64,000 bases of DNA from Epithemia pelagica (GCA_946965045.2 OX337234.1:3658001-3722000); one strand, 5' to 3'; positions 8,157 to 60,318 are shown, counted from the first letter of the stretch. The notes: a model not told the origin generated them from the letters alone. A program made the numbers and translations.

Positions 8157-10508
8157 TCAAATACATGAAGCTTGTGTTTCAAGAAGCTTGTAGAATTGCC
8201 AAATCAAGTGTCCAAAGTGATTCGGATCTTTCACCGAGCCTGCCGTTTTCAGATGAGCAGTGGCTTCTTCATATTCGTTCAAGTCCGTGGGAACAAGTTT
8301 ATCACCGGCAAGATGATGGCGCCAAGGGTCCACGCGCACCTTTTTTGTCGTATAATGACAGTATTGGCAGTAAAATCCTCCATCGGCAGTGTTGTGGGAA
8401 CCCTCCAGTGAGCTGAAACGTGATCGAGCTCCGCCACAGTTCTTGCAGTCACTTCCAGATGTCTCGGCGCAGAATCGTATATAGCAGGTCGAGCATGTCT
8501 TATCTCCATTCGAACATGAAGTTAGTGGTTTGTTGCACTCCTCACAAATACCTGGAGGGGGATGAGACTGAACACAAGCTTGGGTTAAATTCTTTTCCAA
8601 TAGAATGCGGGCAACGCCAAAGTGCTCATCAAATTTGCGATCGTGCGTCTGTCCAATCACAGCTCCATATATCATGATCCAATCAAATGGCGTCAATGAC
8701 AAGTGTTTCCAGGAATCAGGCGACAATATCTGATCAATTTGACGAAGCACCAGCCCTTGACCAATTTTTAGAATCCGAGTTGCACGCCTGCTATCAAGCA
8801 TGTCCATGTGTTTCAAGAGATTACAAACCGACAAGAGTTCAGTCATGGGGGCGGCCAAACGGCTCACATTCTGGGGACTTTCCTTGAAACTTGTCATGGC
8901 TATGTGTTCACTCTTCTTGAAGAGGTCGAGGAATCTAGAAAAGACGGACGGCCCACAATCTTCCAAACCCAGTTTTGTCGACATATCGTAAACGGCATTC
9001 AGACCCTGCACATAATCTTCGGCATGCTTGAGACGTGATGTGAGGACTTTGATTTGGCGTTCAATGAGCCATTTCTGTGTCTCGGCGCCACCCACACAAA
9101 AGGAAAGAGCCTTGATGAAATCATTGAATCGACTTTCTTCTAGACCGTCTTCGAATTGATCCGTATCTTGAATCACCTCAAAAGCCTTTTCGATCTTCTG
9201 TTGTTCGCTAAACTTTTTCCATCGTCGCCCATAGGTCTCTTTTCCAAGTTTGTCAATCAAAGTCCGGTCCATCTTCTGCTTGAAGAGTTCCAAGGTTAGA
9301 CTCGATGCTGTGCGGTAAATGAAGGCGTACACGGCCGAGATAGGAATCACAATTGGAGAGTATGCACTCATGTTCACCTGAGGTCGTCTCGCCCCGGCAA
9401 GAATCTTGCGCAGCGATTGTTCTCGGTCAACAACGACATTGAACATGCTCGCAACCGCATCTGTCGCCTCCTTGACTAAACCCTTTTGTTCCTCTTCGTC
9501 TGGGTCATCAATCTTGTTCAAAAGCACAATCAATGGAATCTCCTTTACTTCATGGCATTGAGTCTTCGCCAGCTTCAATAGTTCCACCTGTTCTTCTGTA
9601 TTGACTCCTTGTCTTCCATCGAGCACTACAATGACACAATCAAAAGTGTGCCAGTGCGATGAGACATAGTTGCGATACTTTTCGCTCACGCCAGCTTCGT
9701 TTATTCCTGGAACATCAATAAGCACAAGCTTTGTGTCATTTCTCATTTCACAAAGGGGTTCATCTACTTCAATGTCAAACATCTTTTGCTGTAGCACGTC
9801 GCTGTTGCGGAGCACTTGGTTGTCGGCCGTGGTCTCCTTGAGAATCGTATCAGCCGTGACCATGACGGCCGAGGCGCTGGACGTACTATCGTCCTCCTCA
9901 TCCTCCTCTTGTTTCGATTCCGTTGTAGTAGTCGGCTTTTTGGCGTGGATGCGAAAATGATTCACTCCGGCTGTAGCACGTTGCATCGAAACCTCACTGT
10001 ACGTATCCTTCAAGAGGGCGTTCAAAATCATGGTTTTGCCCACCGAGACATAGCCAATCAGCGCCACGCGAATTTCGAAACCCTCCATCACATCTGTTTG
10101 GATCATTGTCCTACCACTGCTGCTTTCACTCTTCGGGTCTTTTGCCACAGACCTCGAAGCGCGACTAATACTACCACCACCGCCGCCAGTCGCCGTGGAT
10201 TCCGAAATGGACGACGTTGTAGTAAGCATGGCACTCTTGTCCACCGTCCCCGGGTATCGTTGTCTCTCTGCGAGTTTTCGAGCCTTCTTGGTTTTGGTCA
10301 TGGTTTCAGGATTGTCCATCAGCGTCCATGGGCGGCCGTGATGGTTCCCTCTTGATGATATACGTACTATATCCACACAAGGTTGCGAAATTTCAGAACA
10401 GGTTTTGATTGGAGAATGCCCTCCACTGTCCGAATCACAGTGCCTTGTAAGTGATTCAAATTTGTTTGTCGATGCAAGTTCGGAAGTTCGTTTCTCGATT
10501 CTGATCAT
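8157..10508 (-). CDS. Dynamin-like GTPase with C-terminal double zinc-ribbon module, copy 1 (intact)
   Basis: G1 GYVSVGKT, G2 MQRATAG, G3 DVPG, G4 NKID; helical stalk; four CxxC (CEEC, CSTC, CKNC, CQYC); terminal DPNHFGHLIWQF. The true start may be downstream (MDNPET, ~10319). Confidence 0.85.
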   Translation of the reverse strand: MIRIEKRTSELASTNKFESLTRHCDSDSGGHSPIKTCSEISQPCVDIVRISSRGNHHGRPWTLMDNPETMTKTKKARKLAERQRYPGTVDKSAMLTTTSSISESTATGGGGGSISRASRSVAKDPKSESSSGRTMIQTDVMEGFEIRVALIGYVSVGKTMILNALLKDTYSEVSMQRATAGVNHFRIHAKKPTTTTESKQEEDEEDDSTSSASAVMVTADTILKETTADNQVLRNSDVLQQKMFDIEVDEPLCEMRNDTKLVLIDVPGINEAGVSEKYRNYVSSHWHTFDCVIVVLDGRQGVNTEEQVELLKLAKTQCHEVKEIPLIVLLNKIDDPDEEEQKGLVKEATDAVASMFNVVVDREQSLRKILAGARRPQVNMSAYSPIVIPISAVYAFIYRTASSLTLELFKQKMDRTLIDKLGKETYGRRWKKFSEQQKIEKAFEVIQDTDQFEDGLEESRFNDFIKALSFCVGGAETQKWLIERQIKVLTSRLKHAEDYVQGLNAVYDMSTKLGLEDCGPSVFSRFLDLFKKSEHIAMTSFKESPQNVSRLAAPMTELLSVCNLLKHMDMLDSRRATRILKIGQGLVLRQIDQILSPDSWKHLSLTPFDWIMIYGAVIGQTHDRKFDEHFGVARILLEKNLTQACVQSHPPPGICEECNKPLTSCSNGDKTCSTCYIRFCAETSGSDCKNCGGARSRFSSLEGSHNTADGGFYCQYCHYTTKKVRVDPWRHHLAGDKLVPTDLNEYEEATAHLKTAGSVKDPNHFGHLIWQFYKLLETQASCI

Positions 10509-10740
10509 ACCATGACAGACAGTGTGGTCGAAATTTCACAACAGGTTTTCATTGGAGGAATGCTCTTTACTGTCCGAATCATAGTCCGTGCGAGATACTC
10601 TCGGAAAAGCTTCGATCTATACCAATCCCACACGATCGGTGATTCACTCTTAATACTTGTTCGTCGATGCAAGTTCGGTAGGCATTCGTTTCTCGATTCT
10701 GACAAGAGTGTAGTCGAAACTTGAGACCGGTTTTGGAAAG
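10387..10740. repeat. Two diverged ~140-170-bp tandem units (plus a partial third) at the 5' end of dynamin-like copy 1
   Basis: gaaatttc..aacaggtttt.attggag.aatgc...actgtccgaatca.agt...gtcgatgcaagttcgg...ttcgtttctcgattctga occurs twice. A homologous pair lies at ~25490..25810. Confidence 0.75.
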
Positions 10741-12044: not shown

Positions 12045-13595
12045 CTATTGCGCGGAAGACCGGTTCTGCGCCTTTTTGGATTCCAACCCACGAGGACGCC
12101 ATAATTTTCGTCCTCCTCCAACCGAGCGACTGGTTCGTTCCTGTGGTTGGTTCATGGTGTTGCGAGAGGAAGAAATCGTAGGAAATGTAGGCTTGGCATT
12201 CTTTCGACTCGAAAAGGATGGTTTGCATCGCACCGAAACTTCCAAACATGGAGGCGGCTTGTTGTTCGGCACCGTAGTAGTAGCATAGGCAGCACTGTTG
12301 CTGCTAGTATACGGAATCAGGAGTCCCCGCGGTTCGGTGGAACCGGCGACCGAGTCGAGGACAAAGGAGGGACAAATGTTGGTGAGATTGATGCGGGCCC
12401 GTGTCAATAGCAGTTCCTGCTCCGAGCAAGCATGCAAAGACACTGCCTTGTTGCTGCTGGAACAGTCCTGCTCGCTATTACTGGCTGCTTCGTGGGGAAT
12501 ACTCAAGAGCTCGTGCGCCGCGTCCAGGAATTGGTCCATGACACGGCCAAAGACTGTCTGTGTCATTTGCTCTCGTGCCTTGGCAATGCCTTGTGGGAAT
12601 CGAAGAATGCGAATGAGTTTGCCGGCATTTTGAGGAAGACTGTTGGGATTGCAAAAGGCCATTTGCATCAAGGCATGAACGTAGGGGACCAAATCCATGT
12701 AGGGAATGGCCAAAAACACGGGGGGCAAGACGGGATCTTGTACCGTCAGTCGCGATGTCAAGGCACAGGTCCAAGGACCCAGCACCAAGGAGATGGACAA
12801 TGGCGATGATGACTCGTCTGGTGGAGCTCGTGGAGTGTTGTGAGATTTGGAGCACCGGTGGAGAAGTTCCAGTAGCCATATCGGTACAGGGGTACTTTCT
12901 GGTACCATCTGCTTGGAGAGAAGGGAATCTTTTCCAGATTCTCCTGCCGCTTCGGATTCTTTTTCTTCCTCTTTGAGCTTCTTTTGTCGTAAATGCTCCT
13001 GTTTCTTGGCCCGTGCCGCACCCTTGACAAAGGCAGCACGTAGGGGCGCCACAATGGCCAAGCATTCTTGCAACAAGTGCGATGGAATTTGAACCTGCTC
13101 GGCAGCTTGAACAAAACATCCAGCCACGATATCAAAATGAGTGGCATCCAACCCCAAATCTCGAAACAAGCGGCTGTGCGTCAAGATTAAAAAGTCAATC
13201 AACTCTTCGGTCGTGGGCGGTGGAGGAGCGTTTGGGACGGTTCCACCAAAGACGACCCGAAAGAGTTGTCGCTGATGCACTCGCAAGGTTTCAATGGGAA
13301 CATTTTCAAAAAAGTGAGAGAGTTTGGATTCGTTGCCAATGGCTCGCACAAACGCATGGGTAAATGCCTCCAAGGCTTCCATGCCACCCAGTCGCTCAAA
13401 CAAACTGGCTGGTTGGTCCTCCTCCTGATCGACAAGGCTGGATGCTTTTTCATCCTCACAAGATGAGGAGCAACACGAAATATCTGGAGAGGCTGTACTG
13501 GTCTCGAATCTTTCATTGCTTTTTTCCAAGATTTTCGGTAAATCTTGGTCGGTGAGATTACGAGACGAGGTTGTGAGGAAAACAGGTGGTGCCAT
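12045..13595 (-). CDS. Group I truncated haemoglobin (2/2 globin) domain protein with a long C-terminal extension
   Basis: SLFERLGGMEALEAFTHAF...KLSHFFENV...HQRQLF...HSRLFRDLGLDATHFDIVAGCF matches the trHbN pattern (LxxRLGG, FF at CD1, HQ at E7, proximal His). Likely ATG at 13595; the ORF track extends to 13676. Confidence 0.85.
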   Translation of the reverse strand: MAPPVFLTTSSRNLTDQDLPKILEKSNERFETSTASPDISCCSSSCEDEKASSLVDQEEDQPASLFERLGGMEALEAFTHAFVRAIGNESKLSHFFENVPIETLRVHQRQLFRVVFGGTVPNAPPPPTTEELIDFLILTHSRLFRDLGLDATHFDIVAGCFVQAAEQVQIPSHLLQECLAIVAPLRAAFVKGAARAKKQEHLRQKKLKEEEKESEAAGESGKDSLLSKQMVPESTPVPIWLLELLHRCSKSHNTPRAPPDESSSPLSISLVLGPWTCALTSRLTVQDPVLPPVFLAIPYMDLVPYVHALMQMAFCNPNSLPQNAGKLIRILRFPQGIAKAREQMTQTVFGRVMDQFLDAAHELLSIPHEAASNSEQDCSSSNKAVSLHACSEQELLLTRARINLTNICPSFVLDSVAGSTEPRGLLIPYTSSNSAAYATTTVPNNKPPPCLEVSVRCKPSFSSRKNAKPTFPTISSSRNTMNQPQERTSRSVGGGRKLWRPRGLESKKAQNRSSAQ

Positions 13596-15573
13596 GGTGT
13601 TGTTTGACCACTCTTTGAAGACAACAACAAGTGTAGGATGAAAATGAGAACAATCTACTCGTAATGACAAGTGCAACGGTTTGGATATGGAGAAAAGGAC
13701 TAATTAGTCACATTGTTGTGTGTTGTCCTGCATTCGGAAGATGCTGGTTGCCCATGTCGTTGCCAAGTCATTATGGCAGTGCAACTGTGACAGCAGCAAG
13801 TAACGGGCAAGTTTGCGTAAAAGACGATGACCTGGAATGGGGGTCGTATTAACAAAGAAATGGATTCGTTTTACTTCCACACTTTGTATCTTTGCTCTTT
13901 GCTGCTTCTAGAAGAAACGATTACGGTTGTCTTTAGGATGGAGCAGTGAAGCCTCTCAGATGGTACGAAACTGCCACACGAGGGACGATTAACATCAAGG
14001 GTGTTGGATTATGGGCCATTTCTTGATTTCTTATGGCTCCCCTTTGCATGATGGTCCGAAACCCAAAACGCTTGATAACATAGTTATAAACAGATGACGA
14101 CTTTTTTCCGAGGCACTATTCTTGACCGTCTCAAACGAGGTCAAATGGCGATTGGATAATGTGGAGCCAAAGTTGCAAAAGTTGCTCTCGACCTCGAAAG
14201 AAACGAATGATAACTTTTGTTAACCCTTTCTGGAGATAATTGCCCCAAGACCAGGTCCAACTGGATTCGACCACTGTGATATGGCATGTGCGACTGATTG
14301 ATAAATTGAAAAAGGTGTCATGTTTTGACACAGGACCTACCAGATATCATTTTCTGCCATGACTCTTCGGCTTACGAGTTTCTAGCCCAGTCATTGGATA
14401 CCCTACCAAACCATCGCATATCTTCCCCCATTGAATTGTCGAGGATATACGGTAGGGGATGTTCGACGCTTTATTATTTTAGGCTGAGTCGACAAACGAT
14501 AACAAAACCACCTGTTGCTGCCGGATGTAGTTGTGTGTTGTGTTGGACAAGATGGTACTCGTATATCTTACTCCATGACGCCCAGAACTACGTGAAAGTA
14601 AGAACAGTATGCATCTCAAGTTATGGGATATGAGATTATTATTGGTTCCATGGCATGGGATTATTAGCATTAGGTGCAACGTGCAATGTTTTTGATAACA
14701 AGACCACGAAAGCATCCCGTGAAGTAGACAATGGGACGAACACCACAACCAAACTGGATGGTATCATTTCGAATATGGTGGTAATGATGATACACTGGAG
14801 AGCACTACTGGGGCTTTGTGACTTATAGTGGCACTAGAGAGACAAGGACGACTATGCTGTCGTCGAAGATGTGACAAATGCGATGGCACCAGAGCGTTGC
14901 GTACTTCACTGCCGTCAAGGTCCTATGGGGACACCATGGGCGGTGGAAAGGAGCACATGGTTTGGCATTTTGTCTCTTGTTTTATAAGTTGAGAGTTTGG
15001 AGGGCTGGATCAATTCAATTCAAACAAGTAGCTCAAACAAGGTTCTACCGTTCTTCTCCATCCATCTTTGTCTTGGTTATCTCGAAAATGGAAGCAAATA
15101 GGCCGGTTCGAATCTTGTCATGAGATAAAGTATGGAGGGGATCAAATCAATCGTGTCGTCGCTCTTTTCAGAAGTCACTGCACGGGGATTTCCGTCTGTC
15201 CGCCCGTGTAGTGTTGTCTGGGTGGAGCTATCCTAGCTATGAGGCGATCCAAATGAGGCATCCGCGAACTATGGAGGCATTTTTCTGGCCTAGAAATGAC
15301 GAGCACTTCGACACGGCAGGGGCGGAGGATCGGCAAACTTTGGAACAGAAAGATAGCGATAGTGAGACCGGCAAACCTATCGAAGACACACATTTCGTTG
15401 GAATATTTTTTTAACTTAGAATTTGCCGATTTCCATTTAGGGAACGAAAATCGATTCGTTTGGGGCAACCACAAGCATTCATTTTTTGGGAACCGGGTTC
15501 GAAAGAGACCCTGGGAAAACGATAAAATCAAACTGGGAATGTCTCTTTTTCGAGAGTGTATCTTTGAAGTCTA

Positions 15574-17655
15574 TTAGTTTTTGGAAATCTTGGAACCTCT
15601 TCCGCTTCCGGCAGACACAAGGGTCCTCTTTTTGGAAGGGGTTGTCTTTGATTGAGACTCCTCTTGATTTACAGCATTGTCCCAGTCCTTGATTTCGGCA
15701 GTCTTGCGCACGAGATTGCCAAACTGCCACAGCAAATGACCAAAATGACGGGGATCGGAGGGCGCGTCCACGATTTGCACCCTGGTTGCATTCTTGAAGA
15801 GTTCTGTATTCGTCGGGACCAATCCATGACCGTGACAACAATGTTCTAGGGGATCTAGCGACCACTTCGTTTTACTGCCACAGAAACAGCAGTGCCCATT
15901 CTTGTCAATGGGTCGGAGTCCATTACCGGCAGTTTTGCAATAAAGGCAAGTGAAGGAATGATCTCCAGATTCACAAAGATAAATAGAACAAGTGTTACAG
16001 AATGGGACCGTTTGCACGGTTCCATGGCGTGCGTAAATTTGGCTGCACGTAGGACTTTGATTGCACGTGGGACAGTGCTTGGAGCTCTGAGGGGCAGACA
16101 CGTGAAGAAATTTTCTCTCCAAGAGAATTCGCGCCAAAGGTCCCAGGTGTTCGTCCAACGACCCATCTCGAATAGAACCCAACATGGACCCGCATATAAG
16201 AACCATATCGTCTATGGACACCTCCTGCCATAAGTTTTGGTCCTTCAACGTCGAACCAAAAACATAATCAAGTTGACGAAGAACCATCCGTTTTGCCTGT
16301 TTGACAATTTCACCCGCCTTGTTCGAGTCCAAAACATCCATATCGCTAGTCAAACCCCAGAATGAAAGGAGTTCCTCCATAGGCTTGGCCAAGTGATGAA
16401 CCTCGAATGGACTTTTGGAAAACTCTGTGAAGGCATTTTCGACGCTTGTTTTGTGAAGTTCCAAAAATCGAGAATGAACCTGTTTTGCCGCTGAGGCTAC
16501 ACCGAGTCGAATTGACTTCTTATAAATGGTTCGAAGCTCTTGTACATAGTCCATGGAAGGGTCCAGCCGCGACTTGGCATCATCGATTTGGTCTTCAATC
16601 ATTCGCTTTTGTGTGGTTTTGCCACCGATAAGAAAAGCCATGGCCAAAAGCAAGTCCTTGAACCGACTCGCATCGAGACCGTCCTCATATTGATCATCAT
16701 CTTGGATTACCTCGAAGGCCTTCTCGTACTTTTCAGCATCCTTGAATTTCTTCCAACGTCGTCCATAGGCTTCCTTCCCCAGCTTTTCCACCAAACTGTT
16801 GTCGATCTTGGCTTTGAAATCCTCCAAGGTAAGACTCGCAGCCGCCCGATAAATATAGGCATTCACAGCAGAGACCGGAACCACAATTGGAGATGACACA
16901 CCCGCCTTATTGTTCGACCTTGCCTTCCCAGAAGTTATCTGGGCCAGCCATTTGGCTCGATCGGAGACTTTAAACAATTCTTCAATCTTTTTCGTTGTTT
17001 CCTTGACAATCAGCTGGTGCTCCTCGTCTTCTGGATCGTCAATCTTGTTCAAAAGCACAATCAACGGAATCTGTCGCACTTTCTTGCAATTGTCCTTGGC
17101 AAGCTTCAAGAGTGCAACTTGTTCCTCTGTATTGACGCCTTGTCGTCCGTCCAGTACCAGAATGACGCAGTCGAACGTATGCCACTTGTTTGAAACATAG
17201 TCCTTGTACTTCTTGCTGGCACCGGCTTCATTGATACCTGGAACGTCCACCAAAACCAGCTTGGTATCGTCTCTCATTTCGAACAAATCTTCTTCGAGTT
17301 CCACGTCAAACACCTTTTCCTGTACCTCTTTGCTGGAACGAAGCTTTTGATTGTCGGCCGTTGTCTCGGCGAGCGTTTCATGGGCCGAACGAACCTTGCG
17401 ATTCGCACGTCCATTGGATGCTTTCCTCGAATCCTTGTTGGCAGGGCCACTCGTCTGGTCGGTGGTGGATTTCTTGGTGATGCGAAAGAAATTCACACCG
17501 GCTGTTGCCCGTTGCATGGAAACCTGACCAAACTGATCCTTGAGGAACGCATTCAGTAGCATCGTTTTACCCGCGGAAACATACCCCATCAAGGCGACGT
17601 GAATCGTTTCAAACGCCGTGGCCTCATGATTCTCGAGGTTGGTGGATCGACACAT
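15574..17655 (-). CDS. Dynamin-like GTPase with C-terminal double zinc-ribbon module, copy 2 (intact)
   Basis: GYVSAGKT, MQRATAG, DVPG, NKID; CPTC, CNTC, CLYC, CCFC; DPRHFGHLLWQF. The ORF track extends to 17841; likely ATG at 17655. Confidence 0.85.
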   Translation of the reverse strand: MCRSTNLENHEATAFETIHVALMGYVSAGKTMLLNAFLKDQFGQVSMQRATAGVNFFRITKKSTTDQTSGPANKDSRKASNGRANRKVRSAHETLAETTADNQKLRSSKEVQEKVFDVELEEDLFEMRDDTKLVLVDVPGINEAGASKKYKDYVSNKWHTFDCVILVLDGRQGVNTEEQVALLKLAKDNCKKVRQIPLIVLLNKIDDPEDEEHQLIVKETTKKIEELFKVSDRAKWLAQITSGKARSNNKAGVSSPIVVPVSAVNAYIYRAAASLTLEDFKAKIDNSLVEKLGKEAYGRRWKKFKDAEKYEKAFEVIQDDDQYEDGLDASRFKDLLLAMAFLIGGKTTQKRMIEDQIDDAKSRLDPSMDYVQELRTIYKKSIRLGVASAAKQVHSRFLELHKTSVENAFTEFSKSPFEVHHLAKPMEELLSFWGLTSDMDVLDSNKAGEIVKQAKRMVLRQLDYVFGSTLKDQNLWQEVSIDDMVLICGSMLGSIRDGSLDEHLGPLARILLERKFLHVSAPQSSKHCPTCNQSPTCSQIYARHGTVQTVPFCNTCSIYLCESGDHSFTCLYCKTAGNGLRPIDKNGHCCFCGSKTKWSLDPLEHCCHGHGLVPTNTELFKNATRVQIVDAPSDPRHFGHLLWQFGNLVRKTAEIKDWDNAVNQEESQSKTTPSKKRTLVSAGSGRGSKISKN

Positions 17656-19125
17656 CGTGGCAACGAAAGTCTCGTAATACAAGTTGCAACGTTTCCACTC
17701 AAATGGAATCAAAAAGGTCGTTCTGGATCTATGATCTGGAATCGCCAGAACGTCTGACTGCACCAAAGTTTGAGTCGATGGATTGCGACAAAACCTGGTC
17801 GCGACATAAACGGAATTCACGGGAAAACCTCTATGGGCCATCTGGTTTTTGATAGGGATACCCTAGTAACATCCAACGCAGACCAATCGGGTTCCACAAA
17901 TTCATGGTCCGATTCAGAGTCACCTACCAAAGGCCTGCAATCCATACATGGTTCCAATACAAAGACATGAACTACATACACGCACGTTCTTGATTTACAA
18001 GCAAGATTCGTTGCCACGTCATTAGCATCGACATCCCACGAAACAATGGTTCAAAGGTCTGAGCATTCTTCACAAGGCATTCAAACGAAACGACAGATCT
18101 TGATGGAACAATCTACTACCCTTCAAGTTTCATTCAGAATTCTCCTCTATACTGCAGAATTCAGAGACAATGGTCTCGAGGCATGGATCTGAATTCGAGT
18201 CCAGGAGCTAGCTTCAAGCTCGATCCCTCAATATTTGATCCAGACTCTTGTCATCTGTACCGATGTCAATGGGCACACTCCACACAAACCACTGGATCGA
18301 AGGGGTTCGAAACTCCCTCGCTTGTCGTGTTGATCCTTGGCGGTTTGGGCCATGTTTCGAGTGCAAGCCAGGAACAATTCGTCGGTATCGATGATCGGCA
18401 GTTGACATTTGAGAGTGCGAACCATTCCATTTGGCGGTCAGATTCCAAGCCATTGGTTGGCAGAAACTCAGAAGCTCTTTGTGAACTTAGACCGATGCAA
18501 TCGGTTGGACGATTCAATGTCCATTCGGAGGAGATTGAAATGAGCCAAGAGTCTGTCCACGTCGCATCGTGGGGCCATTTCTTGGCCAAACGAGCCTTTT
18601 CAGCTAACAATGGCAACGGCTCTGATGGATCTACCATGATGAAAGGGGGAAGAAAGACATTCTTTTATACCTTGGACCACAGTGTGAGCTTATGCGCATC
18701 ACAGCGTCACAGCCCGTCATCCGTCATCGTCAATTGCCTTTCGAGGGAGGCGTGAGGGACACGATGTGAAGTTTGGAATTTCCAGTATATCATTTTGAGT
18801 ACAGATACGTTGAACGACCCCACTCCTGTATGACAACCGTGACTGAAATGGTTCTTTCTGTGAGCTACTCTTATTTCGCAGGCAAATTAGCACCATCAGA
18901 TGCGCCACACATTAGATGAAAAACTTCATCTCTTGACAAGCCTCATCGAAAAGAAGGAATCCTAAAAGTTCTGCTAGTTTGGTGATTAATATATTTGTTG
19001 GTGTCATAAGAGAGATCGCGGTGTGGTGTGTATATATGTATATATAGTCACTGGACTGATTCGGCAATACAATCACTCCTTCTTGGCGCAAACAGGACTC
19101 CCGCATCAGAAAGGGGATACAAGGA

Positions 19126-21129: not shown

Positions 21130-22619
21130 GCTTGCAGAGAACACTTGCTCTGCTTTTATATGGTAGAAGAAGAGAGGCAAAAGTAGAGCAACTAGTCGAA
21201 CTTGACTGGATCCACGGGAGTCTTGAAGTTATGGACTGTGCCTGATGACAGATGCTTTCTTTTGTTCGGTAAAAGATACCTTTGTCGCTTTTGGATATCG
21301 GAACTTTGTGTGTCAGAATTCAGCTGCCCTCTAGATTCTTCTTCGAAACCAGTTGCATGTTCCCAGCTGACGAGTCCCAAGTTTCACTGGAAAACCTGTG
21401 AATGACGTGTCATTCAGGACCTGCCGCCTCTGGACCACAGGATCCTACAGCATACAACAGAGACGGAGAAAGTATATTCAGAACGTGCCTCTGAGCAACA
21501 GAAAAACACAAGACAACATCCCGCAGAAAGGATTGGCACTACTATCTCGGGCCATATAGCTCCTTCAAAAGCAGATCCATGGTACACCCGCGCCTCTGAG
21601 GGGATAAAGAAATACGAAGAATTGGATTTACCGAATCCGTGTCTTTCTGTGATAACGTTGGCCTGGTAGTCGGAAAACAGAAACAGATGAAAGTGTGAGA
21701 GTTCAATAGTTCAAGGATCCCTCAACAGGAATCAGGAAAATGAATCTTGCACTTGTGGTGCACCGGAGACTAAGAAGCGCCACAACGAGCTACTGATCCA
21801 ACTCACTCGTGATACAGAATCTTCGAGTCTTTTTTATCACAGGGACGCAGACTTGAGTGCTCCTGGCGCACACGCGAGACCATCGTCCGAGTACCAAGAA
21901 CTTTCATATTCCATCCCCAAAAGAGCTCAAAAGTATTCTTTTTGGTAAGGGTTTCGTCCAAAATGTTTTTTCACGCACAAGGAACCATTGAAAGCATTTG
22001 CGGTCTTCTCATGTCATTACCCTCATCCGAAACAGCTTGGTTCGATCCGTTTTCCTCATGCATCTTGTTCCGGAAGGATACGCGAAAGATACAAATGCCT
22101 GCTACGGTTGGTTTCATGGAAACTTGAGAAAACTTGTCTTTCAACAGCAGAGTGAGTATATGGACTCACTGCAACGAGAGGTTCCAACTCGTCCCAAGTC
22201 ATCTTCATCGATCGTGCTTTGGTTCAAGCAAAAAAGCAAGGAACCGACACCAAAGGATCCAGTATGTGGATTGTATCAGTGGGACGAGCATTTGAAGGTC
22301 TTTGGCATTCGATACCAGACCGGGAAAGCCGGATTTATTCCGCTTCGTACGTTGTAGGAGTTGCTGTTAGACATGACGAAGAAATGTTCGAATCGATAGG
22401 AGGACACAACTTTGCCCAGAATGTAAATGAGCGACCCGAGTTGCGACATACAGCATGTGGAGTAAGGCATAAGATCTTTGCCGAGAATCTGCAAAGGTGC
22501 AAAACGCCTTGTTCCTGGAATACCACTTCGCCTCGCAGTATTATTTATTCTTCCATTAAACCTTGCCACTTGCCATGTACCAGCAAGGATCGGCTTTCAT
22601 TTCGTCACGTCATGCTTCG

Positions 22620-22890
22620 TTATCCATTGGCTCATTCAATGCAGGCCACCATGCTCTTCTGTTGTTGCCTCAACCCCGATCAAGACAGACGTTGTTGAGA
22701 AGCTGTTGGTGGAGCGGCTCCATCGTGACGATTCAAATTGGAATTCGGAACAGACAGACAGAGCCAGAACGATCCGTTGAGAGGCTCGCGGAGCGCACGT
22801 CTCTCGCGCAGGGCGGCAAGTGAATGCCCATTTTCTTGTATTTCGGGTGTGTCTCGATTCTCGATACAGGATGCGCCATCAAAGTCCTCT
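22620..22890. repeat. Segment paralogous to ~26210..26510, lying 3' of dynamin-like copy 4
   Basis: Shared blocks gattcaaa(a)ttggaattcggaacaga, ggcggcaagtga...ccattttcttg.atttcg.gtgt.tct and ccatcaaagtcctct. Confidence 0.75.
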
Positions 22891-23137
22891 ATTGGATAAA
22901 CAACAACACCAACGAACACTACGAATGGTCTTGGAATAAGATCAGTGAACACATAGTTAGCCAAGAAGGACATGGAGTAAACGACATCGATCTAGGTAGA
23001 TCATGCAAATGGAGAGCCACTACAAAACACAGCAATTGTTAGATCTAATACTAGGAGTTTGAATACAGCGGAACGTAACAGGTTTAAGGAGCTCGCTTTG
23101 ATATGCAATGCATGTGAATGACATTCGTGAGATCCAT

Positions 23138-39704: not shown

Positions 39705-39983
39705 AAAGGAAATATTGTGAGTTTTCAAAAGAATCGGAAAAGGAAGGCTGCAGCGATGGGAGAGGATATGGCGATGAAGAATGAGGGAACTGAGGAGGCG
39801 GATGCAGACGAGTTGGCGAAGGATAATTGTTATGTAGAAAGAAATACGCTTTGCAACTCGCAGATTGGAGTGGAAGAGCGAAAGGTTACTCGCTTGCAAG
39901 TAGGACGAGGGAAGTGACGTATCGGTCTGGCGAGTGGAGGAACACCTTTCTGGTTTTGGGCAGTCTCGTCACTTGGCGAGATA

Positions 39984-46523: not shown

Positions 46524-46671
46524 ATCAGAAAACCGAAACAGCAAAGAGTGTGAAGGCTAGTTTAGTTTTCATCTATCATCCTAGGTTTCCGGAAGTATTC
46601 TACTTTCCGTTCGCTAACGCGCCGACCTGGTGTAGTCTAGACTCCCTCCACTCGCACCTGGTCGCTCGTAT
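46524..46671 (-). repeat. Penelope pLTR segment, downstream copy (overlaps the last ORF codons)
   Basis: Direct repeat of 49901..50048. Confidence 0.9.
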
Positions 46672-49600: not shown

Positions 49601-49690
49601 GTCGTTATTCGTCTCTTGGCCGGATCCGGTCGTACCCGCTTTGGCTACGTCTTCAACAGGAGGTGCGATGGACAAGGTGGAGAGCTTCAT
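46637..49690 (-). CDS. Penelope-like element polyprotein: reverse transcriptase plus GIY-YIG endonuclease (intact)
   Basis: VIPTDKT, PTRLVV, SVDAEAMYPSI, GLTIGGYESAWLAD, YRDDGL, FPFLDM; CNC...CPYGGFC linker; VYKATCLKTGKQYIGNT...RIQQH. ATG at 49690. Confidence 0.93.
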   Translation of the reverse strand: MKLSTLSIAPPVEDVAKAGTTGSGQETNNDDLNRREEKLRLLVQSLAEEVSERFVPAPTADERTVDAINGIGDFKTRCRWAEFWRNDHKDRVETEQAVWASYYHNNPTLLSYAQWDRSLMDPEWQWPDPFSKKNYEEELEEEEKNLFTSGFMSGVKPEHKKKSAPIGSNELECFLKQVEEAIIAESLANKKNRNENKLSLEFKDLLTQLKEHDLVVIPTDKTNSFTIMSTRQYAKEIKIHLSKSAIKIPKSKLSEIVENCYAFLTELDPYLSTNERNFLKEKIESKAVPNPKILVKNHKKQNADGTFPTRLVVPATNFTAGFPKIGYLGIKHLLDKHEVKYGSKNIIQSSDLKQKLESLSFNMSNSTIVSVDAEAMYPSIKFQLIYDAVQYYAEALPPETHRTINLCLDLIFFGMTNTIIAFKDEYFLYDGDLKPEERGLTIGGYESAWLADLVVSFLLEATYDAMFDPMHYFGIYRDDGLAVFKGKQSTEEVQKWIEAFQQDINDIAGNDFLKFTATIWDPLNEHNLDSITNKSVSIEKTPAFPFLDMEIFWHDNGNLAYKVHLKPNQQLKYLNRGSAHTPGCFKAIPNGVMKRLTKLTSVDESNHDSRLDELYPVHFAALEHSKLVKPNSTPTLGELAKKMESEKLDTASQALKKRRERDRKRAIYFKIGYSDFWKKPIHKTLKEIKSRFPSLSWLRISMSYHRFTNIREHFQGDLNSKLNDGLRSLDFEDLDCNCRNREACPYGGFCRRSIVVYKATCLKTGKQYIGNTQQHVKKRIQQHVQDVKQLVLKDKSSDSFASHFACFVPRDTEKKEIKNHVRLKVDILWQGKPLSTVKTFGTKSCKLCARERLEILKFTSKHPNLAINKCNEIYRACRHKPRFHRFPPNNNAPSTDESTNDERVLVCRPVSTSSSQSNTSFFSWTSSQSPTTRLSTSNDDFDQGLDGRSSSILDTVPPMTYQERRIEGLRARFGFSTPKDTPPVVVYGENDLEELTPTDPLTTDEFDTSDQVRVEGV
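46975..47012 (-). ncRNA. Hammerhead-ribozyme-like core in the Penelope 3' region
   Basis: Minus strand GCA-CUGAUGA-GUCG-acgaa-CGAC-GAAA-GAGUCC: both conserved boxes plus a perfect 4-bp stem II. Stems I and III are non-canonical. Confidence 0.4.
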
Positions 49691-49900
49691 CTTCAACTAT
49701 TGGGCAATAGGGACAAGGACTCGCTGTTGGGCTTGGACTTGTAGGCTACCGCGGAGGAAGGGAAGAAGAGGATCACCAGATCTTTCGATCTTTCGGCTTT
49801 TCGATTCTCGTCGTCTTGGCGGCGAAATTTCAAAAAGCTTCCGGATGCAACCTTGGTGGAATCGGAACCAGATGGTAAAGACTCGGCTTCGTAGGTGTGT

Positions 49901-50048
49901 ATCAGAAAACCGAAACAGCAAAGAGTGTGAAGGCTAGTTTAGTTTTCATCTATCATCCTAGGTTTCCGGAAGTATTCTACTCTCCGTTCGCTAACGCGCC
50001 GGCCTGGTGTAGTCTAGACTCCCTCCACTCGCACCTGGTCGCTCGTAT
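49901..50048 (-). repeat. Penelope pLTR segment, upstream (5'-truncated) copy
   Basis: Direct repeat of 46524..46671. Confidence 0.9.
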
Positions 50049-50604: not shown

Positions 50605-52299
50605 ATGCAAACGAACCACACTAACGACGACGACATCGATCAATGGCTGTTGGATGCGGAACGATTGCTCGGTCATGAGAATCGAGATCAGCACCATCAA
50701 GACGCGTACCAACACAATGGACTTTCCATTCACCGTCGTCCTGTCATTGGATCTGCAGAGACTGCCATGTTCCGGCCTCCTGCTGGACATTCTACGTCAC
50801 TGGGTAGTAGTACGCCGACGTTCACACCAGCAACAGCCACAAGACTCCCCACGTCGGCGGTGGACAGCAGTCTAGTTGCACCTCAGTTCGCACCAAATAC
50901 TCTCCAAGCTCCATCCACAGGACAAGCAGCAGATGTATGCACTCAATTCCCTGATCTCATTCGAAGTCATGTGGATGAAATTATTCGATCTAGCACCTTT
51001 CCGATGGAAGAAAAGGAAGCTTACATGGAAGCAGTGACTCGAGACGAAGCTCTAATTCCGACAGAATCAGACCCTATCCAATACGTTCGCTTCTGCAACT
51101 ACGATCTCTGGGCCGGAGCACGGCGGCTCTGTGTGTATTGGACCGAACGGCTCAAGTTATTTGGCCCCCAACGGGCCTTTTTACCGCTCACAATCACAGG
51201 AACCGGGGCGTTGGATCCATCCGATGTACTGGCCTTTCATATTGGCTTCGCCAGTGTCCTACCGTGTACAAAATGTGGCAAATTAGTGATTTGGTTTGAT
51301 CGACGAAAGCTGATACCAACCGTATCCGTGGAGAATCGTCTGCGCTGTCTCTTTTACTTGAATCACATTCTGACCGAGAATGATCGCAATCATTTGGATG
51401 GAGGAGCCATGGCCATTAGTGTATTTGTGACACCACGACTGCATGCCATGGACTTGATCTGGAGGAAACGGGCTGGTCATCTTCTCCGTGCCGTGTTTCC
51501 ACTCAAACTTGAGGTCCATTTGTTGAATGTACCACACAAGAAAAAGCCTCATTTGGTCACGGAGATGGTGAATGCGTTTCTGGACTTTATGCGCCGGTAT
51601 CTAAGTGGTGGAACGACTTCGCTGCATGTACATACACAACACGAATCAGGCCAAATGCTTCAGATATTATTATCATTGGGATTGACCAAAAAAGGCATTC
51701 CCCTCTTTTTCAATGGGGAATGGAAGTATGAACATTTTACCACTTGGTGCGAGAGACGTAAAGAAATGGAACAACGATCTCACTTTCTCCGTCTAATGGT
51801 TGAGCCATTACAAGACGAAGGAGGTGGTGCAATAGAGCAAGACCAAAGAGGAGCAACATCCTCTTCTTGTTGTACAGACTTGTGGGACGCTGCCAAAAAT
51901 AAGAAACGAAAACATGGTACGGATACGGAAACAAAATATGTCGCCTTCTCATCATTTTCGTCCACCTCATGTTTTGTTGCGCTTTCTACACACACAGACA
52001 GCGACGACGACAATGCTGCTTCCGATGGGCAGCAAGCTTCATCAACGGCCGATGGTAATACTAAGAAAACTGGCCGAAAACCTACGAAACGACGAATTGC
52101 CGACATTTTGCATTCGCGTCGAAAGCGTGAACAAAAGCGTGAAGAAACCTTGGCACTCAAGGAAGAACACAAGAGATTGGTGGAAGAAAATCAACGTCTC
52201 AAGGAGGAACATGAACGATTGAATGAGCTAGTCTTGAAGGCAAACACTGCCGTTACACAAACCATCGTCAAGAGCACCATGCGTTTGTTTGATGAATAA
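50605..52299 (+). CDS. CRAL-TRIO-like plus bZIP-like protein (paralog of 2831..4921)
   Basis: ESDPIQYVRFCNYDLWAGARRLCVYWTERLKLFGPQRAFLPLT; C-terminal KRRIADILHSRRKREQK plus heptads. Confidence 0.75.
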   Translation: MQTNHTNDDDIDQWLLDAERLLGHENRDQHHQDAYQHNGLSIHRRPVIGSAETAMFRPPAGHSTSLGSSTPTFTPATATRLPTSAVDSSLVAPQFAPNTLQAPSTGQAADVCTQFPDLIRSHVDEIIRSSTFPMEEKEAYMEAVTRDEALIPTESDPIQYVRFCNYDLWAGARRLCVYWTERLKLFGPQRAFLPLTITGTGALDPSDVLAFHIGFASVLPCTKCGKLVIWFDRRKLIPTVSVENRLRCLFYLNHILTENDRNHLDGGAMAISVFVTPRLHAMDLIWRKRAGHLLRAVFPLKLEVHLLNVPHKKKPHLVTEMVNAFLDFMRRYLSGGTTSLHVHTQHESGQMLQILLSLGLTKKGIPLFFNGEWKYEHFTTWCERRKEMEQRSHFLRLMVEPLQDEGGGAIEQDQRGATSSSCCTDLWDAAKNKKRKHGTDTETKYVAFSSFSSTSCFVALSTHTDSDDDNAASDGQQASSTADGNTKKTGRKPTKRRIADILHSRRKREQKREETLALKEEHKRLVEENQRLKEEHERLNELVLKANTAVTQTIVKSTMRLFDE

Positions 52300-53220: not shown

Positions 53221-56200
53221 CTAATATATCAAATGTCTCATTGGAAACTGACGAGTCTGCCATGTATCGAATACCGAAAATGCAAGGCATCCCGCTGCCC
53301 GAAACTGGATCGTGGCAGTAGTACTTACTGGAGTCGTGACATTCACCGTCCCAAACGCACGAGCCGTCACAGTGTAGACAACAAGAGGTCCCCTGATGAG
53401 AGGAGTGGGAGGTTCCAAGAGTAGACCAAAGGGTGGAAGGTTGCTGGACGACAAAGTGGTACTGATTTTACGTCCCAGCACAGTCGAAAGGACCAAGCTA
53501 TACTCCACACGAGTAACGGACGACGCATGATCGGGACGAAACCGGGGAACCAACAACTGAGAAACGACCCAACCACAAGGATAGGTCTCCTCTGAGGTGA
53601 CCTGTTGAACAATCTCGGTACCTCCCTTGGAATTCTCAATGACAAAATAGTCAATTTGTGGTAATGGTGGTTCTTCTTCTTGCAAGGATGGAGTCATTGT
53701 GGTACTCAGTGGTATACTGGGAGACTCCGAGGGCAATGACGACGTTGGTTCCAATGATGGGAAATCACTGGGAGACTGCGAAGGTTCGGCTGACAGAATG
53801 AAACTCGGTGGTGTTGATGGGGCAAGCGACGGCTCCATGGATGGATTGAAACTCGGCAATAGACTTGGTTCTGTCGTGGGAATGTCAGCGGGCGGTTGAT
53901 CACTGGGAGACTGCGAAGAATCGGCTGACAAAATAAAACTAGGTGGTGTTGACGGGACAAGCGACGGCTCCATGGTAGGATTTGAGCTCGGCAATAGACT
54001 TGGTTCTGTCGTGGGAATGTCAGGGGGCGGAGATGAAGGTTCCAAGGACGGTTGATCACTGGGAGACTGCGAAGGATCGGCTGGCCAAATAAAACTAGGT
54101 GGTGTTGATGGGACAAGCGACGGCTCCATGGTAGGATTTGAGCTCGGCAATGGACTTGGTTCTGTCGTGGGATGATCGGACGGCTGAGATGATGGTCGAC
54201 TCGATGCAGCGGGATATGGTGACGGGTATTCTGACGGTAACTCTGACGTAGGTGATGAAAAAGAGTCGCTTGTATTTGGTGGCTGGAGATCGAAGGGAGA
54301 TGCACTTGGTTTGTCGATTGGAGACGGACTTGGACTATCACTAGGAATTTTACTCGGTTCTTTGCTCGGGCTACTGCTTGGGTTGAACGAAGGGATATCG
54401 CTTGGCTGGATCGAGTCTGGCCCAGTAGGAAGTGGTGTTGTGGGTTCTGTCTCGGGGGCCTTGGTGGGTCGACTGGATGGTTCGTTACTGGGCTGGGACA
54501 AAAGGCTCGGAGGAGTCGACGGGAGCAAGCTTGGAGATGAACTCGGATTCATGCTTGGAATTCCCGAAGGGCTATTCGACGGTGTGTTGCTAGAGTCGCT
54601 ACTTGGAGAGGAGCTCGGAAGATTGGTGGGGTTAGCTGATGGAGAAGCGGAAGGAACATCAGTTGGAGATGCCGAGGGCGGTGCTGTGCTGGGAAAGGTC
54701 GAAGGTCTAGCGCTAGAGACTGAACTGGGAGTTCCAGTAGGGAAACTAGAAGGATATATTGATGGCTCCAAAGATGGCTTGTTTGTTGGCAAAACTGAGG
54801 GGACACCGCTTGGTGACATGGTTGGCTTCTCACTCGGAATCGATGACGGAGAATTAGAAGGATGAGAGCTCAGTGATTTCGACGGGGGCAAGCTTGGCGA
54901 TGAGCTCGGAACGATGGAGGGACTGCTACTAGGAGACCGCGAAGGCCGTGAACTTGGGTTGTCTATCGGCGAAACCGAAGGGATACTGCTAGGTGGCATG
55001 CTCGGTTTCTCATTCGGAATCAATGACGGAGATTCAGAAGGTAAAGTGCTTGGCAATGAACTGGAAAGTTTGGACGGATTGATGCTCGGAAACCCTGATG
55101 GTTCCGAATTTGGTTCATTTCTTGGGGAGAGGGAAGGGGCACTGCTAGGCCACAAGCTTGGCTGATCGCTCGGATTCCAAGACGGGATTTGTGATGGTAT
55201 TGAGCTTGGTGAGTTCGATGGCAGCAAACTTGGCCATGAACTGGGCGCAATGGAAGGAAGGCTGTTTGGAAATAGTGATGGTTCCGAACTAGGGTCTCTT
55301 GTTGGAGAAGATGAGGGTTGACCGCTTGGAGAAATGCTTGGGTTGTCGTTTTGAGTCGATACCGGCAAGGGGGAGGGTAACAATGTAGGGAGTAGACTGG
55401 CTTCATTTGACGGGAAAACACTAGGCAATATACTCGGGCGTTCGCTATCGTTCACAGACGGCTGAAATGTCGGCAGTACGGTAGGACTTGAGCTTGGCTC
55501 TTCTAGTTGTTCCGTAGGTCGCGTTGACGGTAGCGAACTTGTAGGATGTTCGGATGGTTGATGTGATGGAGCGCTGGACGGTCTAATGCTCATTGGGTTT
55601 CCAGAAGGACTTGTACCTACAGAAGGAAGGGAACTGGGAAACGAGCTCGGCAACAAGGTTGGAGACTCCGTCTTTCGTGGGCTGGTGGTTGGCGACCCGG
55701 TCGGAGCTTCGGTTCCGGGGAATGACCGAGTGTCGCTGGGAGAGTCCGTTAGTTCGTCGTTTGGACTGTTGGAGGGCAGCACTGAGGGTGAATTGGTAGC
55801 GTCAATCGAGGGGAATTCCGTCGGTAGAAAGCTCGGATTGCTACTGGGCTTATCGGATGGACTCGAGCTGGGAATCGTCGTTGGTTCGATACTTGGTTCC
55901 AAGGAGGATGGCCGATCCGACAGTTTGACAGACGGCAGCTCGCTAAGCATGTTGGACGGGACGGTGTCATTGTCGGATCGAAGCTGCTACGATCACTCGG
56001 CCACCGAGGCCGATTCCATGGTCGAGTCCATGTCTTTGTCGGACCCATCTGCTTCATAATGATTTTGAAATACGTTCATGAATCCCTTTTCTTGACCGAA
56101 ATTCGGAGAAGCCATATCTGAACCGCTTCCATCTTCTGTGTTTGTGCTTTCCACGGTGTCCTCCTTGGGAGAAAACACAGTATCGTGATTGGTGTTACCG

Positions 56201-57822: not shown

Positions 57823-58388
57823 GACAGACTGACCGAGTCAAAGAAGAAGACGAAATGGATACCGAAACGAGGGATTGGATCGATCCGCAGGAACTATGCG
57901 ATGGCCCCCTGTCCTCCTGGTGTTCCTGTGTTTGCTGCCAAAATTTTGAGTTTTTGGCCAAGTCCGACTTTGGAGAAGAGGAATCTTGGCAATTCATCGT
58001 TCGAGGCTCTCCAGGTTTTCTTGCATTGTATCTCCCTCCGCACCTAATTCGCCTACAGATTCGGTTCATAGTTCACACTTTGGGAGAACGGTACCGAGAA
58101 CGTAGAAAACGGTGAGTTTCACTAGGCAGGATTGCCATGTGGATGTGGCACTTCGCACCTCTATTGATCGTGTTCTTGGGATCACTGGGGATGGACAGAG
58201 TTGAATTTTCGAACAATATGCCTGAATTCTTACTACCCGTCGGCACAGATGTGGCGCACTGAAAGAGTAGCTGATTCCCGTTCATGGACAGAAACCGTAG
58301 AGGACAATAGCTTGAAGTCGTGAAGATGACATTACTGAAACAGAAATAACATTGGCCGGGACGCGACATTTTCACACAAAAAGCACAC

Positions 58389-60318
58389 TTATTGAGGACA
58401 CTGCGTTCGTTGTTCGTGCGTGACTAGCACCAACTTGCGATATCGGAAAATCAAATGTCCAAAATGCTTGGGGTCTTCCAGTGATAGGGCTTTGGGAACG
58501 TGAACTTTTCTTTCCTGGAGGTCTTTGTGCACAGCTACGAATTCTCCATCCACAACAGTGTACTTCAATGGGTCGCGCTTGTCCACTTGCATATTTGTAT
58601 AGCTACATAAATGACACTTGCCATTTTGGTCCAACTGGCCACAGAGACTACTCCCACGAGCAATGCGACAAAAACGACAATGTTGAAGCTTGTTGTCGTC
58701 TTGGAACAAACAAATCCTGCAACGGTCGCAAAATAAAACATTCTGTCTCATGATACCGGCAATACCACATTTGGGACATTGATGGCTCATGTTTCCGTTG
58801 AGCTCGCTTTTGTGAATTGTACTCTGACAATCATTGAGCTTCTTATCCAAGAGGCACCAAGGAATACCCAGCTTGCACTTTTCAAAAAACAAATGCTCAG
58901 CTCCTCCCAACATGGCCGATGTGATGAACATCCAATCATACTCCGTCACCTGAGTATAATCCCACTCTCCATTCTCGGACAGCACGACCTCCATCTGGCG
59001 TAGGACAATGGTTCTTGCCATTTTTAGAATATCCCGAGACATTAGTTCATCAAAACCTTCCATCTGTTTCGCCAGATCGTAATAGGCAAATATCTCGTTC
59101 ATTGGTTTTGCTAGTTGGTCCACTTCCTTTGGACTGGTAAAACGGCGAAATGCTTCTTCAATACTGTCACTTTGCAGCTCCATGAATCCAGAATGTATGG
59201 ATCGTAATGGCCGCTTGGGACATATCATGCATTGTTCCCAATGCTTGCACATAATCCATTTTCGAATCTAGTCTTTTCGCAGAGGTCCTGAGTTGGTTCA
59301 CAATAAGCCACTCTTGAGTTGATGTTCCACCAACGCAATACGACAAGGCCGACAAAAAATGATCAAATCGATTCTCCTTTATACCTTCTTTGTACTCTTT
59401 CCTGTCTCGAATCATTTCATATGCCTTTTCATAGCGTTCTTCCTTACCGAAGGATCTCCACTGGCGACCATAATAGTCAGGTCCGAGTTTGTTTACCAGG
59501 GATTCTTCAATTTTGGTCTTGAACTCATCCAATGTCAAGTTAGACGCAACTCGGAAAATATAGGCTTTCTTTGCTGACAAGGGAATCACAACAGGCACAT
59601 TCCTGGCCATGCTCTCATAAACTGGCCTCACGGTATGTCCTACAATTTGGGAAAGCGATCCCACACGATCCGGTGTATCAAAGAGTTGTTCAATGGCTTG
59701 TGTTGTTTCATTAACGAGCACCTGCTGTTCCTCTTGAATGATCGGATCGTCAATCTTGTTGAGTAAAATGATGAGGGGAAGCCACTTGGATACCTGACGT
59801 TGAACCTTGGCGAACTCTAACACCTGAACCTGTTCTTCCGTATTGACGCCTTGCAGACCATCCACTACGACAACCACACAGTGAAACGAATGCCAGTTCT
59901 TGATGAGATAGTCCTTGTACTTGTGGCTTGTTCCAGCTTCATTGATTCCAGGTACATCAATCAACACGAGCTTCGTATCGTTTCGCATCTCAACCAGAGG
60001 TTCATCCAACGCAATTTCAAACGTCTGTTCTTGCAGTTCAGTGCTTTGACGAAGCACTGAGTTGTCTTGAGTGATTTGTTCTAGCGTATAGTTGGCCGAT
60101 CGAACGTCACCACCATGGTTCGCTCCTCCTGAGCCCTTTTTATCGATATTTTCTTGTTGCTTTGTGGATATGCGAAAGAGATTGATGCCAGCGGTGGTTC
60201 GTTTCATGGACACTTCACTGAACTTGTCTTTCAAAAGTGCGTTAAGCACTGTCGTCTTCCCGACCGATACGTTGCCAATGATGGCGACTCTGATTTCCAG
60301 ATCCGATGCGAGCTTCAT
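58389..60318 (-). pseudogene. Dynamin-like GTPase copy 6, single frameshift
   Basis: GNVSVGKT, DVPG, NKID in 59167..60318. A frameshift near 59210, shorter than the paralogs at this point (MSQAA/PLRSIHSGFMEL versus RAVGKQLVPIHSRFMEL), leads into 58389..59252 with CPKC, CDRC, CRFC, CHLC and DPKHFGHLIF. Confidence 0.82.

Follow-up and report, generated by a model that had tools for sequence, protein, structure and literature searches.

The 64,000-nucleotide window analyzed here, from the diatom Epithemia pelagica (GCA_946965045.2 OX337234.1:3658001-3722000; positions are counted from its first letter), harbors six dynamin-like GTPase paralogs, named c1 to c6 in order of position, all on the minus strand between 8157 and 60318. 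Together with a seventh, small relic, they were retrieved by open reading frame (ORF) listing and by tblastn with the intact copies, and the similarity between copies is far above chance (tblastn E 1e-52 to 0). The locus is a birth-and-death cluster: over short times, copies have arisen, decayed and disappeared. By analogy with known defence loci we consider, with a probability of about 0.42, that the cluster encodes recognition-coupled GTPases in which a variable cysteine-rich cassette would act as the specificity element, most plausibly in defence. The initial annotation had described six same-strand paralogs with shared GTPase motifs and a terminal DPxHFGHL motif; positions and strand held for all six, while only c1, c2 and c3 turned out to be uninterrupted, c4, c5 and c6 being decayed, and the relic was added to the count.

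The G1 motif reads GYVSVGKT in c1, c3 and c4, GYVSAGKT in c2 and GNVSVGKT in c6; these small variants aside, the motifs first reported are present. The G2 threonine, G3 (DxxG, here always DVPG) and G4 ([NT]KxD, here NKID, NKVD or NKMD) occur with G1 in all five copies having a G domain, c5 being without one. Across 56 homologs, G15, G20, K21, T42, P128 and G129 are invariant, and D126, N192, K193 and D195 are kept in at least 90%. Pfam Dynamin_N matched over the full model with 38-50 bits (gathering threshold 27), though not exclusively, as MMR_HSR1 and GTP_EFTU pass their thresholds as well. The Pfam scan of the copies gave no family at threshold on stalk or module, and neither Dynamin_M nor GED matched in any copy, therefore the diatom protein is not a classical dynamin-related protein (DRP) or Mx. 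In a sequence-only profile search of the PDB, Der, EngA and Era came first, NCBIfam returned small_GTP, Era and YsxC fragments limited to P-loop or G3-G4 stretches and far under the family cut-offs, and PADLOC matched LeoA over residues 8-47 only (E 7e-7). Since sequence searches reach no further than these stretches of Der, Era, YsxC and LeoA, sequence alone is ambiguous for the G domain.

For c3, an AlphaFold2 model computed from an alignment with 56 homologs reached a predicted local distance difference test (pLDDT) of 85.8 and a predicted template modelling score of 0.79, and in a Foldseek search of the PDB its best 50 matches were all members of the dynamin superfamily (probability 1.0, E 1e-8 to 1e-5). 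Mitofusin-1/2, SynDLP, Fzo1 and the bacterial dynamin-like protein BDLP led the list (E 1e-8 to 3e-6), with Campylobacter DLP, dynamin, Vps1, EHD2, Drp1, MxA and OPA1 lower down; TM-scores were low (0.2-0.4), as expected for flexible multi-domain proteins. Against BFVD, giant-virus “dynamin family GTPases” of about 650 amino acids (aa) were matched near full-length (Hyperionvirus, E 1e-16; Satyrvirus, 2e-15). The HMM and structure searches thus sustain the assignment to the dynamin superfamily proposed at the outset, and the modelled fold supports a position nearest the mitofusin/BDLP class. No relatives were found in a pattern scan with tblastn of 185,579 prokaryotic GTDB genomes, nor in IMG/VR by the same procedure, and a bacterial or viral origin by close homology was rejected on the empty outcome of both scans.

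Following the G domain, the stalk is predicted to be all-helical, with a pair of moderately hydrophobic helices whose pattern (W..LS..DW..I..S.LL......F..FG) is conserved before the Cys module. In c3 the hydrophobic helix is WMFIASAMLGGA (residues 467-478), with counterparts in the other copies; the short hydrophobic segment of the initial annotation is thus present, at a hydropathy (0.95-1.1, Kyte-Doolittle, 19-residue windows) below that of transmembrane segments. No transmembrane-grade segment emerged from the same windows, the sole stretch at or above 1.6 being the core P-loop strand of c1 (1.65). A transmembrane anchor was consequently excluded by hydropathy, so that an anchor of the mitofusin type is absent, and a BDLP-like paddle, to which the helix pair could correspond, is a mere possibility. 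At the other end of the protein, the tail motif DPxHFGHL occurs in 6 of 6 copies as part of a conserved C-terminal helix (DPxHFGHLxW), in which, among 50-56 homologs, the His is invariant and followed by a near-invariant G-H-x2-W.

Between the stalk and this C-terminal helix lies the Cys module, whose only conserved residues in 50 homologs are eight Cys arranged in four CxxC pairs, in accordance with the module first described: C80 is found in every one of the 50 modules, and each of the other seven in 90% of them or more. Four CxxC pairs would be enough for two Zn sites, and a double zinc ribbon is predicted; in its AlphaFold2 model (pLDDT 84) the module consists of two beta-hairpin units, the second of which contains a long variable loop. 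When 1.84 billion representatives were searched with a profile of the module, 744 clusters (50% identity) matched at E<=1e-3, and 135 did so at E<=1e-10. The majority are proteins of 600-750 aa with a C-terminal module, or truncated calls; the others are generic repeat proteins of the double-zinc-ribbon kind, labelled DZR or Zn_ribbon_6 by Pfam. Standalone module proteins were discarded as a category, the short matches looking like 5′-truncated gene calls or c5-like fragments, and so was the DnaJ Cys-rich domain, whose weak PDB profile matches (E ~0.02) reflect CxxC pairs without the GxG signature of CxxCxGxG repeats. It is reasonable to regard “double zinc ribbon” as an apt description, membership of a curated zinc-ribbon family not being established.

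Variation among the copies is concentrated in the C-terminal module rather than being uniform, as paralog identities, the family profile and a comparison with a second contig concurrently indicate. The paralogs of the window are most alike in the G domain (52-70% identity), less so in the stalk (37-62%) and least in the Cys module (15-40%). Family-wide, the module is likewise the most variable part (mean pairwise identity 21%, fixed Cys included), ranging in length from 46 to 169 aa and in content from 4 to 16 Cys. In the assembly ENA ERZ21939226, the window lies on contig ctg1360l and a syntenic sister locus on ctg1356l, which together provided three pairs of alleles or homeologs for a domain-wise estimate of the ratio (ω) of nonsynonymous (dN) to synonymous (dS) divergence. 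G domain and stalk of c1 and c2 gave ω values of 0-0.19, i.e., strong purifying selection; ω values of the module are 0.39-1.26. In c2, ω of the G domain is 0.09 and 251 stalk codons carry 0 nonsynonymous changes, while the 92 module codons carry 9 nonsynonymous and 2 synonymous changes (ω 1.26) and the tail has an ω of 0.81. In c1, G domain and stalk together yielded an ω of 0.15 with a dS of 0.050, the module a dN of 0.078 and a dS of 0.185, and the tail 0.110 and 0.180, respectively. Amino-acid changes per codon are 10-30 times higher in the module of both genes, and the enrichment of nonsynonymous changes per codon is significant (Fisher p = 2e-8 for c1 and 4e-6 for c2).

In c3, the first 1260 nt and 1 kb upstream are ~100% identical between the two contigs, nucleotide identity falls from about residue 430, the module retains 49-66% with an 18-nt indel (dN 0.35, dS ~0.9), and the tail returns to 91-97%. 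The two c3 alleles are each other's closest match at 62%, with c5, c6 and Epithemia sequences at 36-44%; neither c3 module thus has a nearer relative among the copies sampled, and a gene-conversion donor was not found in this sample. Simple relaxation does not predict the raised dS of two genes out of three, which would fit old allelic lineages or exchange with unsampled copies.

Gain and decay of copies are both visible along the cluster. The intact c1 (8157-10508, minus strand; 783 aa; Pfam Dynamin_N 38 bits on the translated ORF) comprises a G domain (~9300-10079), a helical stalk (~8556-9299), a double zinc-ribbon module (~8283-8555) and a tail with DPNHFGHL (8160-8282). The likewise intact c2 (15574-17841, minus; 755 aa), delimited by ORF, Pfam and domain mapping, and whose exact protein is also called on ctg1360l of ERZ21939226, is divided into G domain (~16834-17628), stalk (~16084-16833), Cys module (~15808-16083) and tail (15577-15807). 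The third intact paralog, c3 (19126-21129, minus; 667 aa counted from the first ATG), supported by ORF, Pfam, the AlphaFold2 model and Foldseek, has its G domain at 20335-21111, stalk at 19579-20334, Cys module at 19300-19578 and tail at 19129-19299. Residues 1-143 of c1 and 1-71 of c2 form N-terminal extensions with no counterpart in c3, c4 and c6; between the two contigs they evolve neutrally (ω 0.93 and 1.04, respectively), therefore the real start codons may lie further downstream and the extensions, judged from these rates, are possibly non-coding.

The decayed copies differ in what they have lost. The pseudogene c4 (23201-25020, minus) retains a readable G domain and stalk, and has an in-frame stop at 24025-24027, a mostly deleted Cys module and a tail (DPKHFGHL, 23201-23377) in a different frame from the rest. 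The 5′-truncated c5 (26816-27565, minus) consists of stalk end, Cys module and tail, everything before about residue 405 of c3 being missing with no coding sequence upstream, and its third CxxC is broken (CYKY). A single frameshift affects the full-length c6 (58389-60318, minus), in which the frame changes near 59205-59215, at a stalk position matching c3 residues 377-393, with Cys module and tail complete. The relic, recognized by tblastn and frame translations, is a G1-G2 region of ~130 bp of a further copy (22028-22159, minus), 51% identical to c3 residues 24-70, interrupted by stops and devoid of a P-loop, and it is present in the sister contig too.

The sister contig has the same order as the window (c3, c2, a globin-like gene, c1) and lacks the block 22848-27530, which contains c4 and c5. 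Identity of c4 to c3 and c6 is 60-70%, and the tree pairs c4 with c6; c4 therefore predates by far the separation of the two contigs, and its absence from the sister contig represents a loss. Three decayed copies, one relic and this missing block bear out the tandem expansion with turnover that had been proposed from the window. In the sister c1 (ctg1356l, ~11760), a C-run lying precisely on the stalk/module boundary is shorter by 1 bp, owing to which the gene caller stopped at 599 aa; the frameshift may be real or a homopolymer error. In self-blastn the copies share coding similarity of 67-70% without repeated flanks or terminal repeats, and, similarity being essentially coding only, carriage by a mobile element was rejected. 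The exceptions are short non-coding similarities of 73-75%, which link 10487-10700 (5′ flank of c1) with 25597-25799 (upstream of c4), and 22697-22890 with 26305-26508, 300-500 bp downstream of c4 and of c5; both pairs are probably remnants of the unit that was duplicated in tandem.

Phylogeny extends this picture beyond the window, whose copies form one clade with Epithemia clementina proteins. The split between c1 and c2 is older than the divergence from E. clementina, while the c3/(c4,c6) duplications are younger and lineage-specific. Independent same-strand arrays are present in two further diatoms, Seminavis robusta with three copies within 10 kb, and Cylindrotheca closterium with two tandem copies and a divergent third. 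Among the matches listed, named homologs are all from diatoms (Epithemia, Entomoneis, Seminavis, Fistulifera, Amphora, Cylindrotheca and Nitzschia, besides a Bacillariaceae metagenome-assembled genome and one G-domain fragment labelled Attheya), nearly all of them raphid pennates, and the same matches include no proteins of Phaeodactylum, Thalassiosira, Fragilariopsis or Pseudo-nitzschia. The family hence appears diatom-restricted, and MMETSP transcripts, together with entries labelled “expressed unknown protein”, indicate that relatives are transcribed.

Elsewhere in the family the same scaffold bears different cassettes. Proteins aligning over ~68% of c3 keep G domain, stalk, hydrophobic helix and HxGH tail with the CxxC pairs absent, and present W-rich repeats before the hydrophobic helix. 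In three family members (P0056, P0103 and P0108) Nup98_GLEBS, the Gle2/Rae1-binding sequence of Nup98, is above the Pfam threshold (27.4-33 bits, gathering threshold 27), and FG-dense tracts occur in 12 of the 316 relatives fetched (P0009, P0076, P0108, P0116, P0184, P0196, P0291 and others). These GLEBS/FG members come from Seminavis, Amphora and metagenomes, with insertions at different positions of the scaffold; the Amphora protein P0103 has its GLEBS amid CxxC motifs, where the cassette is expected. Judging from these sequences, the scaffold tolerates, and seems to recruit, different interaction modules.

Taken by analogy, these features make a defence or recognition role plausible. Like that of other members, the G domain would drive nucleotide-dependent dimerisation or oligomerisation, and the zinc-ribbon cassette would be the specificity element binding a changing partner, either protein or nucleic acid, most likely from a pathogen or another non-self source; in that case these would be recognition-coupled GTPases comparable to those of the Mx, IRG and GBP loci, on which comparison the defence reading is founded. 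The resemblance to an immune locus put forward initially is sustained by expansion, pseudogenes, presence/absence and module-focused variation, and is not sustained by ω, which is not significantly above 1. A broader version, in which diatoms possess an innate non-self-recognition system made of a mitofusin/BDLP-like scaffold and an exchangeable cassette (one to four zinc ribbons, W-rich repeats, or GLEBS/FG “integrated decoys”), with arrays and divergent alleles kept by host-pathogen conflict, is in our opinion quite doubtful as a whole.

Several observations weigh against a recognition-coupled role. The zinc-ribbon nature of the cassette found little echo in databases, as Foldseek with the isolated module returned nothing significant (best YfgJ, with two Zn, and Rpb9, at E 0.67 and above) and the Pfam zinc-ribbon models remained under threshold on the copies of the window (Zn_ribbon_IS1595 15.6 bits, HscB_4_cys, DUF7693). 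Module ω values derive from 87-92 codons with small counts and are not significantly above 1, hence diversifying selection is not demonstrated; only two close sequences exist per gene, and the paralogs are saturated. Relaxed constraint except at the Cys ligands would explain the amino-acid pattern, and ω is likewise near 1 in the disordered extensions that flank the protein at its N- and C-terminus. The raised module dS of c1 and c3 could be haplotype structure or alignment noise, and c2 displays no such rise. The sister contig itself may be a haplotype, a homeolog or a co-assembled strain.

The main rival holds that the proteins are housekeeping membrane-remodelling GTPases of mitofusin/BDLP type, whose target would be an organelle or secretory membrane that is either peculiar to raphid pennates or expanded there, with the zinc ribbons as a spacer constrained only at the Cys ligands and copy number drifting by neutral churn in a transposon-rich region. 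It is favored by the fold nearest to fusion-type dynamin-like proteins, the strong purifying selection on G domain and stalk, the helix pair conserved before the module, a module ω not above 1, the many transposable elements of the locus and the near confinement of named hosts to raphid pennates. Nevertheless, no transmembrane-grade segment is available for such a task, core machinery does not usually come as several divergent paralogs per genome that are repeatedly and independently duplicated in tandem and pseudogenised, module dS is raised too in c1 and c3, and relatives swap the cassette for unrelated modules; we therefore regard a housekeeping role as unlikely. The latter modules lead to another proposal, that of nuclear-pore or nucleocytoplasmic-transport GTPases whose cassettes bind pore or transport factors, either in a normal pore-proximal function or as decoys for attackers of the Rae1-Nup98 axis. 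Some vertebrate nucleoporins have zinc fingers and MxB acts at the pore. An Mx localisation near the nuclear pore has been noted (PMC11789081). The three members with Nup98_GLEBS, the 12 with FG tracts and the position of the GLEBS in P0103 agree with this proposal, but GLEBS or FG tracts occur in none of the six copies of the window, a zf-RanBP match was not found in the Pfam scan of the copies, and FG/GLEBS members are a small minority with insertions at different positions, so a pore-associated role, which only relatives suggest, is improbable for the locus.

If the two contigs are haplotypes, a c3 identical over 1.26 kb with module and tail ~62% identical in protein, along with a hemizygous c4-c5 block, would suit a determinant of self/non-self (allorecognition or mating compatibility), with divergent module alleles kept within the species by balancing selection and not by pathogens; given the unproven haplotype status and the modest divergence of the c2 module, we deem this very improbable. 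Least credible is an Era/Der/EngB-type (TRAFAC) GTPase with an unrelated helical extension, or its variant as mobile-element cargo. The ranking of Der, EngA and Era in PDB sequence profiles, the NCBIfam fragments and the passing MMR_HSR1 and GTP_EFTU models speak for the former, and the transposons interspersed through the locus for the latter. The sequence matches, however, cover P-loop or G3-G4 only and fall far under cut-offs, the whole-protein fold search returns the dynamin superfamily only, and the cargo variant conflicts with copies that share 67-70% coding similarity without repeated flanks or terminal repeats and with the syntenic c3-c2-globin-c1 order.

Various other genes and elements surround the paralogs. 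Between c1 and c2, a gene at 12045-13676 (minus) has a weak match to bacterial-like (truncated) globins (Bac_globin, 22.8 bits) and is conserved in position in the sister contig, and a TB2/DP1/HVA22 (REEP/Yop1-type membrane-shaping) gene lies at the window edge (652-1827, minus). Two paralogous genes (2702-4921 and 50605-52299, both plus) are 41% identical and have in common an FVR[YF]C.YDLWAGA region and a weak bZIP-like C-terminus; beside them are PT-repeat (Ser/Pro-rich) proteins (5632-7791, plus; 53221-55950, minus), followed by c1 or c6, and these three-gene blocks look like an old segmental duplication. Direct repeats of 148 bp (46524-46671 and 49901-50048; 98.6% identical) bracket an ORF of 1019 aa (46637-49696, minus) with a sub-threshold GIY-YIG match (19.2 bits, cut-off 22.6) and reverse-transcriptase-like sequence, the whole of which looks like a recently inserted Penelope-like retroelement. 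An inverted repeat of ~600 bp and 75% similarity (29974-30549 and 35075-35661) encloses a DDE_Tnp_4 (PIF/Harbinger-type) transposase ORF (31501-32433, plus) and two ORFs without family match. Three large same-strand ORFs (656, 997 and 284 aa; 37734-44215, plus), with strong positive GC skew, no Pfam match and a YVDD motif in the 997-aa one, are probably a divergent retroelement.

Mitofusins and Fzo1 share a similar P-loop context with the diatom proteins (G..S.GK[ST]..[LI]NAL). They are also the best PDB fold matches (MFN1, MFN2, Fzo1; E 1e-8 to 1e-6), with G domain, helical bundles and C-terminal helix in common, whereas the diatom proteins lack the transmembrane hairpin and the helix N-terminal of the G domain, possess the zinc-ribbon cassette and the HFGH tail, are multi-copy with fast turnover, and are only 12-15% identical. 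The bacterial dynamin-like proteins (BDLP, SynDLP, Campylobacter DLP1/2 and the Eleos protein LeoA) are matched in fold over 540-680 columns, LeoA being touched in sequence by a weak P-loop match of ~40 residues in PADLOC; the diatom family differs in being eukaryotic, with no relative in the prokaryotic genomes scanned by pattern, and BDLPs are not known to have a zinc-ribbon cassette. The strongest structural matches of all are the giant-virus (Klosneuvirinae/Mimiviridae) GTPases, similar in size and 12-18% identical. The likeness to Mx, IRG, GBP and GIMAP loci is a functional analogy only, made of lineage-specific tandem expansion, pseudogenes, presence/absence variation and a divergence focused in one surface element over a conserved GTPase core, while the diatom family belongs to another clade, without Dynamin_M or GED. 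Gene turnover is a hallmark of Mx and antiviral dynamin-superfamily lineages (PMC11789081). With double zinc-ribbon proteins (YfgJ/Zn_ribbon_6, DZR, Rpb9/TFS) the module shares four CxxC knuckles, predicted beta-hairpins and profile cross-matches to proteins that Pfam calls DZR or Zn_ribbon_6; it differs from them in its highly variable spacers, the long loop within the second ribbon and a Foldseek E of 0.67.

The literature searched holds no description of a zinc-ribbon dynamin-like family in diatoms, in agreement with the novelty initially claimed. Since two recent superfamily surveys explicitly leave out mitofusin/BDLP-like proteins (PMC10280142; PMC11789081), the architecture combining zinc-ribbon cassette and HFGH tail falls beyond the scope of both. 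Databases already list members from several diatoms, under the names “Dynamin N-terminal domain-containing protein” or “hypothetical protein”, hence the family is uncharacterised rather than unseen.

Cell-autonomous immunity is nearly unknown in diatoms, though viruses, algicidal bacteria and parasites control their blooms. A large family with a conserved GTPase engine and a fast-changing, swappable cassette offers a concrete and testable candidate for such immunity, and extends the dynamin superfamily by an architecture in which the zinc-ribbon cassette is joined to the HFGH tail. Its likeness in fold to giant-virus GTPases further raises the question of gene exchange between hosts and viruses.

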